A DNA stretch of 64,000 nucleotides from Salpingoeca rosetta. Taxonomy: Eukaryota; Protista; Choanoflagellata. The notes below the pieces were generated by a model. The model did not search any database, was not told the origin of the DNA, and worked only from the letters and a program-made list of their open reading frames with translations. Positions within the stretch are counted from its first letter, which is position 1, and every line of letters starts with the position of its first letter. The stretch is from the NCBI GenBank assembly GCA_033442325.1, contig JAWQFM010000006.1, positions 1,379,124 to 1,443,123 of the forward strand, read 5' to 3'. Of the stretch, positions 53,662 through 60,393 are shown piece after piece. The translations under genes and the position numbers were made by a program.

Positions 53662-53988
53662 CACACCTGCGTGTACTTGGGCCTGCTGAACTGGGATTGG
53701 TACGAGCTTTTGCCGTAGAGATGGTAGTGGAGATCCAGCATGCTGCCGCCATCGCCATCCCGAGCCTGAAGTGGCGGTGAAGGCGCAGTGTTGCGAATGC
53801 AGAGTGAGTTCTCTTTGCCCTGCGATGTAGACACAGACACACAGGCGCACACAGACACACACAGACACACACACACAGACACACAGACACACACAGACAC
53901 ACAGACACACAGACACACAGACACACAGACACACACACACAGACACACACACACACACACAGACACACACAGACACAGACACACACAG

Positions 53989-54020
<32 letters not shown>

Positions 54021-55155
54021 ACCACTGGCGATGCTGTGACGGGCTGGGAGCGGGACATGAAGTTTGGCTGCTTTGTCGTCTGATTCTTGTGCGTGCTGGC
54101 ACGTCCTGGTCGCGGGGCGATGTGCTGCACGGCCGTCGACTTCATGGGGCGCGGCACGCCACTGGTCTGGCGATCAACACGACACGAGGGGCTCGAGAAG
54201 GGTTGCCTTGGTGATGGTGACGGCGGCACGTGGGGGAAGGGAGTGGTGTGGAGTTGTGGGGGGTCAACAAAAAAGGAAAAGGCGGGCAGATATGGTGAGA
54301 AGTGCGCGCCCATTGTTTGGCTCTGAACCAAGACGTGCACATCGCATCTGGTGTGTGCAAATTGCATTGGCCAATGGGACATTACACGCAAGTTGCAGTG
54401 CCAGGAGCAATACATGTGGACATACGGCAGCAGAACGGAGCTTCCAATGTGCAGATGGCCGCGGTTGGCGTCTGGGATTGCAGAGCCCAAGGTGTGGCGG
54501 GGCGTGGGGGGGGGGTGGCATCGAGGAAGGAAAGGCGGTGATGCACAAGCAAGGATGAGGAAGACGTTGGGAGCGCGTAAGCATGGCTCGATCGATTTTC
54601 ATCACATCAGCATGCAGCAAGACCACAACAGAACACAGCAAAGTTCGAAAGCAAGGCAACGCAGTGCATGGCAGTGCATGAGGTTGTAGATTTCACGCAC
54701 ATGCTTGTTCTCCATCGCTGAGGCGTCTCCAGACGGCGCTCGTGTGGGGCAGTGCAACGCGCGCGTATGCAAAATCGCCTCCACCTGCGCGCATGTGAGT
54801 GTGCGTGCGTGTGTGTGTGGGTATGTGTATGTATGTATGTATGTATGTAAGAGTGTGTGTAAGTTTGTGTGTGTGTATGTATGTATGTATGTATGTATGT
54901 ATGTATGTATGTATGTATGTATGTATGTATGTATGTATGTATGTATGTATGTGAGAGTGAGTGTGTGTGTGTGTATGTTTGCGTGTGTGGTGAGTAAATA
55001 TGACGATGCGCTGGGCGTGGGCACACAAAGCTAAGAAAGGTATCAAACAACACGCCATGCATGCATGTGCGCGTCTCGTCTTGTCCTTCACCTTGGTTCC
55101 TTTGCTGCAAGTATTGGCTCGGGGTAACATCGTCCGATTGCTTCCAAGACGTCAT
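51907..55155 (-). CDS. Hypothetical multi-exon protein, low-complexity and basic, no recognised domain
   Basis: Start [21 protein letters not shown] at 55155. GT-AG bounded segments include [13 protein letters not shown].., [24 protein letters not shown] and an acidic HDDEDDDD exon. The last exon ends ..[21 protein letters not shown] (stop 51909-51907). Not every junction was verified. Confidence 0.6.
54874..54952 (+). repeat. (GTAT)n tetranucleotide microsatellite, intronic
   Basis: Directly visible. Confidence 0.95.
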
Positions 55156-55358
55156 GGTGGCTTCTTTTGTTCCAAGATGCTTGGCCGTCTGGCCGGCAAT
55201 CTGCACTGCCAACAACACAAACGCACCAGCGCAAGGCACAACAACAGAAGCGCAACAACAACAACCACTGAAGGGGAAAACAAGCAAACCAGCAGCGGTG
55301 CGCGGTTGTTGGGAGGCGATGACAATTTGTGAATGATTTCGTCCACTTTTCCGCAACC

Positions 55359-57074
55359 ATGGCGTTTGGCGATGACCGTGATGATGAACAGAGCAGCGTG
55401 AGGAAGGGGAAGAAGGACTTGCACGTTGCCGCTGGTGCACCTCAACCACGGCAGCGAGTGCAGGGACAGCGAGAGCGGGGCCAAGAAAGGTCATTGGAGG
55501 AGCACGCAAAGGATGCCGTGTTTGGCTTTGCTGTCAAGGCGCTGCTGAAGGCGGACACGAATCTGGAAGCGATTCAAACATGCGCCGGCGCCGCGACTGT
55601 CATCCTTCGCCGGCGAAAGCGACGGAAGCAGGCGCAGGCAAGTGCCGCGTTTGTTCGCATGTTCAGGGTCACCCCAGCCGTGTTTGATGAGCTCGTTGCC
55701 CTCATCGCGCAGTCGCCACACCTGGACTCGCTCGATTGGCACACCCCGTCCACCGCATCCTACCACAGCTACGCTCACAACAGCAACAGCCACAATACCG
55801 CACTCAACAGCACCAGCAGCGCTAACAACAGCAGCAACGGCAACCTCAACGACGACAGCAACAACAGCAACCATAACAGCAACAACAGCAACAGTAACAA
55901 CAACTGCAGCAACAATAACAGCAACGGCATTGTCGTTGTTGCAAATGGCTCCACCAAGGCATCCACAAGACAGCATGGCGCCGCCTCCCACGAATCCTAC
56001 CATGAACACGTGCCTTGTGCAACTGGCGGCGGGGAGGGCGCAAGCGACGGCGCCGAAGGCAGCACTGACAATGGCGCTCGCAGTCTTGACAAGACAGGTG
56101 GTGACCATGTCGCTCAGCAGCAGCAACCAGTCGAGAAACAACACCAGCCAGAACCACGGGGTGAGGAGGTGACAGCTTCGCCCACACAGCAGCCACACCA
56201 GTCCAAACCTACTCAAGATGCAGGTCAACCAGCACCCAGCAAAAGCGAGCACAACACACGCAGCGCAGGTGACACGATGCAAGTTGCGCCTGCAACCCGG
56301 TTGCCCACATACATACCGCCAGCCACGTCTGCCTCACCATCAGCAGCGGGATCCGTACTCTCTGGCGTGGCCTGGGGCCGCCGCTGCTTTGCTGTGAAGC
56401 TGTGTCTGCGGCTGCTCGGGAGCCAGCTCAGCCCGACGCAGCTTGCCGCTGAATGGCACGTCAAGGAAAGCGACTTGATGTTGTGGACGCGGCAGGTGAC
56501 CGAGGCCATCGTGATCACCTTCTCTCCATCACTCAGGTGCGTGTGTTGTGTTTGCGTGTGTGTGTGTTGTATGTGTGTGTGTGTTGTGTGTGCGTGTGTG
56601 TGTGTGGTGTTTTCGTGTGTTGTATATGTGTATTGTTTGTTTATTTGTTTGTATGTATATGTGTGTGTGATTTGATTTGAATCATGCGCGCACCTATGTA
56701 CATGTGTTGTTGTGCACATGTGCTTCTTTATACTTGTCCACCCCCCTCCCCCCAGTGCACTCAAATCATTCCCTTTCCCTTCCTTCGCATGCACGTGGGC
56801 AGCGTGCACAACATCCGTGAGGCGGACCCCTTGCTGCCGTCGTGCCTCGGTGTTCTCCATCACGACTACATCGGAATCGTCCGGCCAGCACGCGACAATG
56901 AGTTCTTCCGCAACGTCGACAACAGGCCCTCCATTGGCGTGCAAGCTGTTGTTGGCCACGATGACAAGTTCTACAGCGTGAGTGCTCACCTGCGGTGCGG
57001 GTGTATTGTCTCTTATGTGTGCGTGTGTGCGTGTGTGTGCGTGAATGTGTGTGTGTGTGTGAATGTGGGTGTGT

Positions 57075-57107
<33 letters not shown>

Positions 57108-59396
57108 TGTCTGTCAGCCTGTCTGTACACAGGCAGTTGTATCACGCCGGGAACCCATCACGAATGAGTGCGTGTATGCACATATCCACATACATATGCA
57201 CACGACACACACACATACGCTAACTCGCACACATACGCTCACTCGCACGCACATGCACAACACGCACCACAACACGCATTTTCCCTCTTGCTTTCTTGCA
57301 CCACGGTCGCTTCGTTGTGGTGATGACTGCAGGTGGCTGCTGGCTTTCCTGGGTCTGTGAAGCATGATCTGTGTTTGCGGCAAACGCCCCTGTGTCGGCA
57401 GGGCGCGCGCGCCCTCTACCCGGGATACCTCGTTGCAGGCGCAACCTTCCCGCTACTCAGCTGGCTGGTCACGCCATTCCCTGCGCCGCAAACGGCAAAG
57501 CAGATGGCGCTCAACAGGATAATCAGCTGTCGACAGCAGCGCGCGGGAAGCGTGTTTGCGCGCGTGCGAAATCGGTTCCCGCGCCTCGAGCAGTTTGACC
57601 TCGGGCTGGACTGGGCAGGAACAGCTGCCGTTGCCTGCTGCCTCATCCACAACCTGTGCTTGGACATGGGAGACACGCTATCACTCTCGCTACTTCAACA
57701 GCCACCACCAGCAGCGGCAGCAGCAGCCGAGTGCACGCATGATGCTGGCTACAGCGATGCTCATCAAAGGAAACGCGGTGGTACAGAGAAGAGTCGCTCA
57801 CCACAACAACAGCGCGCGTGCGCTGTGTGCAACCAGAGACACAGCACCGGTGGCACCAATCAATCCACCACGGGCACACACGCGCGGGGACAACAGTCGC
57901 GCATGTACACATCGCCAGCGGGGGCGGAGCAGCGATTGCAGCTGGCAGAGGCCCTCACATCGGCACGTGCAGGCATCAACGAAGCACACCCAGATATAGG
58001 CAACGGCGGTGGCGGTGGCGGTGTTGATCGCGCTGCACATGCACAAGCAGAGAAGTGTAATGACAGAATAGAGAAGGCGGGCGTTGAAGGAGAAGAAGTA
58101 GAAGGACAAGGGGAGGAAAGAGGCGGAAAGGAAGCAGGGGAAGGAGCGTGCACTGTGTATGCGAATGGGCGTGTCGCACGCCCTGCACGAGGTATTGGTG
58201 TTGCTGGCGCGGAAGACGCCTTCACTCGCGCCCCAGCTGATGCGGTTGGTAATGAGGACGCAGACGATGTTGATGATCCTGGTGATGATGTTGATGTTGA
58301 TGTTGATGTGGTGGCGGATGCCGGGACTCGGAGGATGGGCGGGCTGGCGATTGCTGATCACAGCGACAACAGTGGTGATGATGATGGTGGTGGTGGTGAC
58401 ATGGGGCTGCCGCTTTCACACCGGCAAGACAGCCAGGAGGAGGGTGCGAAGAAGGGGGATGAGAAACGAGAACGCAAGGAGCAGATGGATGAGACAGCGG
58501 GCCAGAGAGAACGGAGCCATGGGGGTGGTGAAGCAAGCGCCGTGGAGGCGAAAGCACGGACGCGAGCAAGGTATTCGCATCAGCGACGGGACCGAGGCAA
58601 CAGCCAAGACGGTGGGCAAGACAAAGACAGGGTGGAGCGTGGTATTGGAGAGGACGGGGCAGAGATAGGGCATGTCGGGACGCGGGGTCAGGGAGGTGAT
58701 GGTGGTACGAAGCCGAAAGGCAGTGGCCAGCGACAAGCAGGGGCAAAGAAGGGGTCGCGAAGGACGCGTGCCGCTGCCGTGAGGGCGGTGAAAGGCAGGC
58801 ATGAGCATGGACATGATGGGCAGGGCGATGAGGGGGTGGTGTGGTCTGAGCACGGCCACCTGCCTGTTGTTGACGTGTATGGACAGCCGCTTTCATCGTC
58901 TGCACCTGCGCCCGTACCGGCCCAACCACCACATGCCACAGTCACAACTTCATCGTCTTCGGGGTCATCCTCCTCCCAGTTGCACTCGCGCCACCCGCTT
59001 CTGCTGTTGCCGTCTGCGCACCACGCTATGCACCACCCTCAACATGTGGTGCAGCAGCAGCATGTGCACGGCGCTGTCAGTGTGAACGATCCAGTGTATG
59101 ATGTGGGAGCAAGTGTCAGCACCACCACACCTGCCGCAGTCGCGAGCACTGAACACTTAGATGGCGCAGCTGCTGCAGTTCGTGGTGCTGGTGGCGATGA
59201 TGAGCAGGTGCACAAGTCCCGCCATCAGCAGCACCCTCACACCACAACCGCTGCACCGCCAGTTTCGCACGTGAACTCGCTGCTGCCACCACCATTCCCA
59301 CCGCCGCCACCACCTCCACCGCCGCAAGCGCCCCTGCACTCGGCATCTCACCGCCACGACCGCGGGCCCCGCGAACACCAACCACAACAACAACAA

Positions 59397-59434
<38 letters not shown>

Positions 59435-59963
59435 CAACGTGCATACATCGCCTTCACCACCTCCCCTGTCTCTGCTTCCAGCGCATCTGGTGCCACCGCC
59501 GCCGCCGCCACCGCTGCCAGTTCCCTTGGACGTGGCACACGGCTCACCTCATCATCACCACAGCCACCATCCGCCACACCACCGCCCCCACGTCCACCCA
59601 GAGCACCACCGCCATCACCACAATCCCCACCATCACCACAGTGTCCAACATCTCCCCAATCTCCACGCCCATCACCACCACAGCAGCGTGCACGGCACAC
59701 GCGTGCGAGTGCCCGTGTTTCTGCATCCAACAGAGGAGCTTTCGTCGCACCCCCGCCTGCCACCCATCTCTCTCGGCGCGCCGCTGGCACCGGCACGAAG
59801 CAACGAGCGTGGTGATGGTGGCGGTGGCAGCGATGATGATGACGACGAGGAGGGCAATAGCGGTCGTGCTGATCATGATGGTGATGACGACGATGGTGGT
59901 GGTGGTGGTGACGGTGGACAGGCCAGGAAGCGAGCGAAAACGGCGCAACCAAGACATCATTAA
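55359..59963 (+). CDS. PIF/Harbinger transposase-derived protein (HARBI1/ALP1-like, DDE_Tnp_4), catalytically inactive. Exons 55359-56536, 56803-56977, 57333-59963 (about 1327 aa).
   Basis: FVRMFRVTPAVFDELVALI; HTH-like VKLCLRLLGS..LAAEWHVKESDL..QVTEAIV. Core LPSCLGVLHHDYIGIVRP..FFRN..SIGVQAVVGHDDKFYSVAAGFPGSVKHD..YLVAGATFPLLSWLVTPF..LNRIIS..AGSVFARVRNRFPRL..VACCLIHNLC. Splice phases are consistent and there are no internal stops. Confidence 0.88.
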
Positions 59964-59985
59964 TGCGCCAGTTGTCTGTGTGTGT

Positions 59986-60037
<52 letters not shown>

Positions 60038-60393
60038 GTGTGTGTGTGATCGTGTGTGTGTGTGTGTGATTGTGTGTGTGTGTGTGTGTGTGTGTATGTT
60101 ATTGAGCTTTGTGCTTGTCAATGCGACATGTCTGCACGTCTCACATATTGGATTTTGAACGGAGTTGTATTGACTGATGCATAAACGGCCACGGCAGCAC
60201 GGAGGAAACAGGGCAGACGATTGCATGTGTGCACACACGCGCATGGGTGTGGGGGTTGGTGTAACGAGGCATTGAGAGCTGTAACAGCAACAGGGAAAAG
60301 GGGACGGGACAGATGTCAAGAACAGGCGAGATGAGCAAAGACACGCAGGTAGGCACACCGAAGTCGTGTTCAAAACATGGATGCATGTGCGTG

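Follow-up and report, generated by a model that had tools for sequence, protein, structure and literature searches.

What is a gene with the sequence of a transposase doing between two host genes of a choanoflagellate? The gene in question occupies positions 55359-59963 (+ strand) of a 64,000-nucleotide stretch of the Salpingoeca rosetta genome (GenBank assembly GCA_033442325.1, contig JAWQFM010000006.1, positions 1,379,124 to 1,443,123 of the forward strand), referred to below as the window. It is a three-exon open frame of 3984 nt, or 1327 codons, with no internal stops and with GT-AG introns. A reading made from the sequence alone had described it as a PIF/Harbinger transposase that lost its catalytic residues and was domesticated independently in a unicellular holozoan, a lineage to which S. 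rosetta does belong. The explanation that we favour, with somewhat better than even confidence, is that of a domesticated, catalytically dead, Harbinger-derived, apparently single-copy nuclear gene whose product would serve as a non-catalytic nuclear adaptor. We conclude that the locus is probably a lineage-specific Harbinger domestication in S. rosetta, credible yet unproven.

The relationship to PIF/Harbinger transposases was established by several searches. Pfam domain DDE_Tnp_4 (PF13359) matches exon 3 with 37 bits, the curated cut-off being 24.8. An exhaustive phmmer search of 1.84 billion protein representatives returned 414 matches below 1e-3, with a best identity of 36%; the named ones are Harbinger, HARBI1 and ALP1-like proteins from plants, fish, molluscs and arthropods, and ESM Atlas features indicate the same family. 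A family profile, made from 52 full-length relatives collected with exon 3 as the query, aligns to residues 346-582 in one stretch that crosses both exon junctions (161.6 bits, E value 1.5e-51). The open reading frames (ORFs) of exon 2 and exon 1, each searched alone, match the same profile with E values of 1.4e-7 and 5.7e-6, respectively, and the three exons correspond to successive segments of PIF/Harbinger transposases. Outside the catalytic triad, the gene is identical to the family at 31 of 58 conserved columns. No solved Harbinger transposase was found in the PDB with the single sequence, and the profile gave there only weak helix-turn-helix matches (E value 0.11). The family features are located as follows.

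55638..55727, + strand: N-terminal Harbinger (FRM) motif, FVRMFRVTPAVFDEL, residues 94-123; profile positions 95-124, a weak match of 4.1 bits.
56394..57725, + strand: helix-turn-helix and DDE_Tnp_4 core, residues 346-582, across all three exons; placed by the profile and PF13359.

Judged from these sequence comparisons, descent of the gene from a PIF/Harbinger transposase is virtually certain, and the family assignment made in the sequence-only reading, once checked against the DDE_Tnp_4 model, stands.

The D-D-E triad, which is retained in 29 of the 52 full-length relatives, is lost from the gene. Alignment of the protein with these relatives by MAFFT and, independently, hidden Markov model (HMM) alignment placed the catalytic positions at H412, G487 and G523:

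56858..56860, + strand: His412 in place of the first catalytic Asp; the family motif GAIDG has become GVLHH.
57438..57440, + strand: Gly487 in place of the second catalytic Asp; LLGDSAYPL has become LVAGATFPL.
57546..57548, + strand: Gly523 in place of the catalytic Glu; VIERAFG has become RAGSVFA.

The surrounding motifs of the gene are GVLHHDY, LVAGATFPL, and RAGSVFARVRNRF. Both the claim that all three acidic positions are substituted and the motif readings on which it was based (GVLHH, LVAGATFP, AGSVFA) were thus borne out by alignment. No acidic residue occurs near the second or the third position (LVAGATFPL, QQRAGSVFA), and a two-metal site therefore cannot be rebuilt. Conserved polar residues near the active site have changed as well (G413H, H415Y, R431V, K432D, R519Q, and R534P). 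With the triad and the neighbouring polar residues replaced, DNA cutting by the family mechanism should be impossible, and we consider the protein very probably dead as a catalyst.

The gene model that underlies these statements consists of the following parts.

55359..56536, + strand: exon 1, residues 1-392 and two bases of codon 393; begins at the first ATG of the frame.
56537..56802, + strand: intron 1, GT..AG, mostly a (GT)n microsatellite; RNA depth is zero in bin 56593-56769.
56803..56977, + strand: exon 2, residues 393-451, with the first catalytic position; RNA depth of 1.7 to 3.4 in two of three runs.
56978..57332, + strand: intron 2, GTGAGT..CAG, rich in (TG)n and CA repeats; RNA depth is zero in bin 57124-57300.
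57333..59963, + strand: exon 3, residues 452-1327 and the stop codon; unbroken low RNA depth.

Exon 1 was assigned on the match of its ORF to the Harbinger profile and on RNA reads from the same strand. The donors read CAG/GTGCGT (intron 1) and AGC/GTGAGT (intron 2), and both acceptors read CAG/. The acceptor of intron 1 at 56802 is putative, having been picked from among alternatives by frame and homology. Homology backs the model independently: the profile alignment has no gap at either exon junction and, since the relatives were found from exon 3 only, the matches of the exon 1 and exon 2 ORFs lend the model independent support. The intact three-exon frame of the sequence-only reading was confirmed in this way. 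A strong polypyrimidine tract followed by an AG (ccacccccctccccccag) lies at window positions 56740-56756, 47 nt 5' of the chosen acceptor of intron 1. Joined to the donor at 56536, an acceptor at 56755 would cause a frameshift and end the protein at 56981; it is in frame only with donors at 56495 or 56540, both of which fit the family alignment less well. A truncated alternative isoform made through this acceptor is possible. Long (GT)n/(CA)n microsatellites are found in the introns and spacers (window positions 53800-55000, 56537-56670, 57016-57114, and 59973-60099) and give rise to many spurious long ORFs (CVCVCV…, HTHTHT…), spurious inverted repeats, and spurious protein matches around the gene.

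Transcription of the locus was followed in about one quarter of the reads of each of three stranded RNA runs from 2026. Reads cover exons 1-3 at a depth of ca. 1 to 14. In nearly all of them the first mate maps to the minus strand, while the reads of both neighbouring genes have the opposite orientation; the RNA of the gene therefore comes from the + strand. The two intron-internal bins listed above have zero depth in all runs. Splicing of both introns is thus supported indirectly, and the RNA support for them that the sequence-only reading had asked for was obtained in part, as exons are covered and the two bins are empty but no junction was listed. Apparent joints at 55790/57709, 57702/59809 and similar positions were rejected as splicing; they stem from reads of other loci that share CAG-type repeats. 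The criterion of an intact, expressed coding region (PMC9710019) describes what is observed at this locus, translation of the RNA being putative.

Whether the frame is maintained by selection was judged from its length, its divergence, and the positions that it has kept. In first-order Markov simulations of the same DNA (5000 each), 7.4 stops were expected in exon 1 and 19.4 in exon 3, each of which has none; 2 of 5000 simulations were stop-free in the first case and 0 of 5000 in the second. For the whole frame, about 27 stops were expected, and the other forward frames of the same DNA contain 7 to 45. In a tree of core domains the gene has a terminal branch of 2.71 changes per site (the median is 0.71) and no supported sister. 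By a rough estimate, 2.71 unconstrained changes per site would have given tens of stops and frameshifts in 1327 codons. That a long frame has stayed intact at the end of so long a branch speaks for selection at the coding level, which appears to hold the frame open. Columns conserved in DDE-intact relatives are kept at 27 of 32 hydrophobic or structural positions, versus 13 of 23 polar ones (Fisher p 0.03), and such retention of fold positions over polar ones is what one would predict for a protein that depends on its fold and can do without the chemistry. We therefore think it likely that this is a host gene under selection.

The alternative that survives best, though we hold it to be unlikely, is an immobilised, decaying Harbinger relic, which would have lost its ends and its catalytic residues and would be drifting, with its frame open by luck or youth and its transcription merely a by-product of the neighbouring divergent promoter. 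Spill-over transcription is plausible, as minus-strand reads of the neighbour reach the bin 55177-55353 and the ATG is at 55359, and the loss of many conserved positions also agrees with decay. A 1327-codon stop-free frame is, however, not expected by chance, the divergence of the core is much too great for a young relic, losses weigh more heavily on polar than on fold-forming positions, and splice signals and frame continuity are intact over two introns.

Several observations nevertheless count against a domesticated gene, and those on expression, splicing, orthologues and database presence also speak for a relic. Expression is low, well below that of the neighbouring genes, and no splice junction reached the three-read threshold for listing. 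The out-of-frame AG at 56755 has a much better polypyrimidine tract than the acceptor at 56802. Triad loss, compared with loss at other conserved columns, does not on its own reach significance (p 0.11), and no Myb/SANT partner gene lies at the locus. Low-complexity tracts occur elsewhere in the genome too, for example a long Gln-codon array in SrosM, and the C-terminal tail described below may for that reason carry little function. A protein containing the DDE segment is absent from the collections searched (a word-based search and the 1.84 billion representatives), and no orthologue was found in either; the word-based search with exon 3 gave no self match and no relatives of 482-1533 aa. In addition, nine single-exon candidate products of the locus were sought in the protein collection as exact sequences and none is there, and a scan of JGI metagenome contigs gave 235 pattern matches, of which none were relatives. 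Choanoflagellate transcriptomes in the collection do have relatives, at 45-59% identity, of the neighbouring NACHT gene, but none close to the dead transposase. Published PIF domestications rest on syntenic orthologues and on a ratio of nonsynonymous to synonymous substitution rates (dN/dS) below 1 (PMC9710019), whereas here there is no orthologue. The absence of an orthologue may reflect sparse sampling or low expression.

The core-domain tree bears on the number of times that such domestication occurred. A plant ALP1-like clade and a clade of DDE-less fish proteins are each supported at 99% by the Shimodaira-Hasegawa-like approximate likelihood-ratio test (SH-aLRT), and the gene lies outside both. 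Its only grouping is with the fish DDE-less clade, at 68% support, and joins long branches. This position, drawn from aligned sequences, fits a separate origin of the S. rosetta gene without proving it. The placement outside both clades agrees with the claim of an independent domestication, which remains putative. Two clades of relatives also have altered triads. The well-supported fish 'HARBI1-like' clade (P0048, P0066, and P0126, from Bagarius, Amia, and Scleropages) has triads GGE, GGG, and GKD; common to distant ray-finned fishes, it looks like a separate dead-triad domestication. In a mollusc clade (P0010, P0072, and P0115), the Glu alone has been lost from the triad.

The hallmarks of an active PIF/Harbinger transposon were taken to be the D-D-E triad, terminal inverted repeats (TIRs) with a 3-bp target-site duplication (TSD), and a second ORF of the Myb/SANT/MADF type; the locus has neither the triad, nor TIRs, nor the second ORF. 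Only CA/GT microsatellites pair across the locus; repeats aside, the flanks share no inverted match better than 11-13 nt, which is chance level. A profile search found no second copy of the gene in the window, and no protein more than 36% identical to the core is present in a library that contains S. rosetta proteins. Depth of the DNA contig is ca. 20 in the gene and in both flanks. A search limited to the locus revealed no Myb/SANT/MADF ORF; opposite-strand transcripts begin ca. 6 nt 5' of the ATG and ca. 140 nt 3' of the stop and so leave no room for a partner ORF. The absence of TIRs that the sequence-only reading had noted was therefore upheld, and the multiple near-identical copies that would have spoken against it were not seen in the window.

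These data also bear on a second alternative, in which the dead transposase controls transposons: it would bind Harbinger ends, a partner protein or an active transposase and act as a dominant-negative repressor of related elements. The helix-turn-helix and the multimer-forming core have been kept and catalysis has been lost, as this proposal would have it, and the same genome is reported to carry a Harbinger-type element, SrosHar (PMC6875170). That element is, however, reported to be single copy and silent (PMC6875170) and, because the core is at most 36% identical to any protein in the library, no closely related element is evident as a target. We regard such a role as quite improbable. A still active nuclease or transposase with non-canonical residues, such as the His412-His413-Asp414 cluster in which Asp414 stands two residues past the first triad position and beside two histidines, is highly improbable, given that no acidic residue lies near the other two positions, that other conserved active-site neighbours are replaced, and that there are no TIRs to serve as a substrate and no other copy in the window.

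In the published survey of transposable elements of the S. rosetta genome, no listed element matches the locus, and SrosHar is the sole Harbinger, with 27-bp inverted terminal repeats (ITRs) and a single, silent copy (PMC6875170). The first 27 bases of its published sequence, in which the 5' ITR lies, do not occur in the window. Its transposase block (…ADNCGAQNKN…GHTKGLHD…; PMC6875170, supplementary file 9) is unlike the DDE_Tnp_4 motifs of the gene. SrosHar may belong to another superfamily, in which case the locus is not a SrosHar relic.

Compared with the family, the gene carries ca. 960 additional residues of low-complexity sequence, and basic runs lie on either side of the core:

55608..55628, + strand: basic run RRRKRRK, residues 84-90, resembling a nuclear localisation signal (NLS) and suggestive of nuclear import.
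55728..56393, + strand: low-complexity insert, rich in Ser, Asn and Ala, lineage-specific, residues 124-345; ca. 13 profile positions in relatives.
57726..59960, + strand: C-terminal low-complexity tail, 745 aa; the commonest residues are Gly, Ala, His, Pro, and Asp.
59925..59939, + strand: basic run RKRAK, NLS-like, residues 1316-1320.

The insert, of ca. 220 aa, contains triplet-type repeats at 55777-55925 and separates the N-terminal motif from the helix-turn-helix. In the tail, Q16 (59385-59432), P9, P7, a His-rich tract (59547-59687) and acidic runs were found, and no Pfam domain was detected in its 745 aa. Its frame has 0 stops, whereas the remaining forward frames have 9 and 43. All of these parts had been described from the letters alone (an insert, a tail of ca. 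750 aa with acidic, poly-Gln, poly-Pro and His-rich tracts, and two NLS-like runs) and all were located. Much of the added sequence is likely to be in-frame repeat growth.

For the domesticated gene that we favour, the following course of events can be proposed. The transposase gene of a PIF/Harbinger transposon would have become a host gene, with the element ends and any partner gene being lost. The helix-turn-helix and the RNase H-like core would persist as a fold, the metal-binding triad now being H412, G487 and G523, and the core would have gained the ca. 220-aa insert and the 745-aa tail with its acidic, poly-Gln, poly-Pro, and His-rich tracts. Weak + strand transcription and a frame kept open by selection would yield a protein whose basic runs probably take it into the nucleus, where the dead core and the helix-turn-helix could form a binding module for partner proteins or DNA, and the disordered regions could be interaction surfaces that recruit other proteins. 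A role as a chromatin or transcription adaptor is put forward with low confidence, by analogy with the dead Harbinger derivatives ALP1 and HDP1, which act so in plant chromatin complexes. On whether this is a choanoflagellate-specific exaptation, in which a dead Harbinger core provides the sole folded module in a nuclear protein of 1327 aa that is mostly disordered, we consider the chances even.

The surroundings of the gene are those of a host chromosome region, as proposed before. Both neighbours are host genes on the opposite strand: upstream a 372-aa gene of the public annotation that has no Pfam domain, and downstream a WGR-domain gene that starts ca. 140 nt past the stop on the minus strand. 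Annotated genes upstream of the locus are an NPHP4-like gene, PTSG_00754 (DUF4062-NACHT-WD40), a tyrosine kinase, a PALP enzyme, and the 372-aa protein. One of the neighbouring ORFs shares 99% identity with S. rosetta PTSG_00754, and 25,631 bp around this gene (window 28012-53642) equal GL832956.1 of assembly GCA_000188695.1 without mismatch (100% identity over this stretch). If the collinearity extends throughout, the whole window would be GL832956.1:785998-849997, reversed, and the matching position of the gene would be complement 790035-794639. A protein search with the downstream WGR ORF gave low-complexity matches only and is uninformative because the ORF includes translated microsatellite.

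At window positions 55000-55360, the gene and its upstream neighbour stand head to head with almost no spacer, minus-strand reads extending to ca. 55353 and the plus-strand ATG being at 55359; reads of the upstream gene splice away at 55085. Around the other end (window 59600-60300), some reads of the opposite orientation cover the last 350 nt of the coding region, and the minus-strand WGR gene is strongly expressed from 60133 on. The 3' end of the WGR gene may overlap the tail of our gene across the (TG)62 repeat at 59973-60099.

Host proteins have arisen from Harbinger transposases several times over, in vertebrates, in insects and in plants, and have often become part of chromatin complexes. 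If the domestication is real, it would extend this pattern to the unicellular relatives of animals, with an independent origin in the closest living relatives of animals, and would have an unusual form that combines complete loss of the triad with ca. 960 residues of added low-complexity sequence. To our knowledge, and in the literature searched, no Harbinger domestication has yet been described from lineages other than animals and plants, and this would be the first. S. rosetta is amenable to editing and tagging. For annotation, the point is that the DDE-segment protein of this locus is missing from the public collections searched.

HARBI1 is a vertebrate counterpart that keeps the D-D-E triad, which the S. 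rosetta gene has lost. HARBI1 and the insect PLG genes (DPLG, APLG, LPLG, and BPLG) are single-copy, as our gene appears to be, and, like it, are Harbinger-derived and have no TIRs, and some of them have introns and NLS predictions, as here (PMC9710019). For the insect PLG genes there is synteny and a dN/dS of 0.04 to 0.33, and their proteins have ca. 356 to 428 aa, compared with 1327 aa in S. rosetta (PMC9710019). As in the gene, the N-terminal motif of active PIF/Harbinger transposases is followed by a helix-turn-helix and then by the RNase H-like core, but these transposases differ from it in having the D-D-E triad, TIRs, a partner ORF and further copies (for the gene, copies were counted in the window), and the gene has its ca. 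960 extra residues.

In Arabidopsis, HDP1 and the Myb-like HDP2 work together in the IDM1 histone acetyltransferase complex (PMC5339849). HDP1 resembles the S. rosetta gene in being transposase-derived: it shares ca. 30% identity with Harbinger transposases, its DDE triad is incomplete, and it has neither TIR nor TSD (PMC5339849). It differs in its co-domesticated Myb/SANT partner, as there is no partner gene at the S. rosetta locus. ALP1 of Arabidopsis, with the triad DGA, is an accessory subunit of Polycomb repressive complex 2 (PRC2; PMC4671723). ALP1 and ALP2, like our gene, have a DDE_Tnp_4-derived core with an incomplete triad (DGA in ALP1) and are immobile, with one or two copies; ALP1 has a predicted helix-turn-helix (PMC4671723, PMC7282668). 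The best match to the S. rosetta gene is a Lotus ALP1-like protein, with 36% identity. In contrast to the gene, which encodes 1327 aa, has lost all three triad residues and has no known orthologue, ALP1 has 396 aa and is conserved across land plants, and the well-supported plant ALP1-like clade does not include the S. rosetta gene. Recurrent domestication of Harbinger transposases is thus already known, and what the present case would add to it is the lineage and the large size of the protein.

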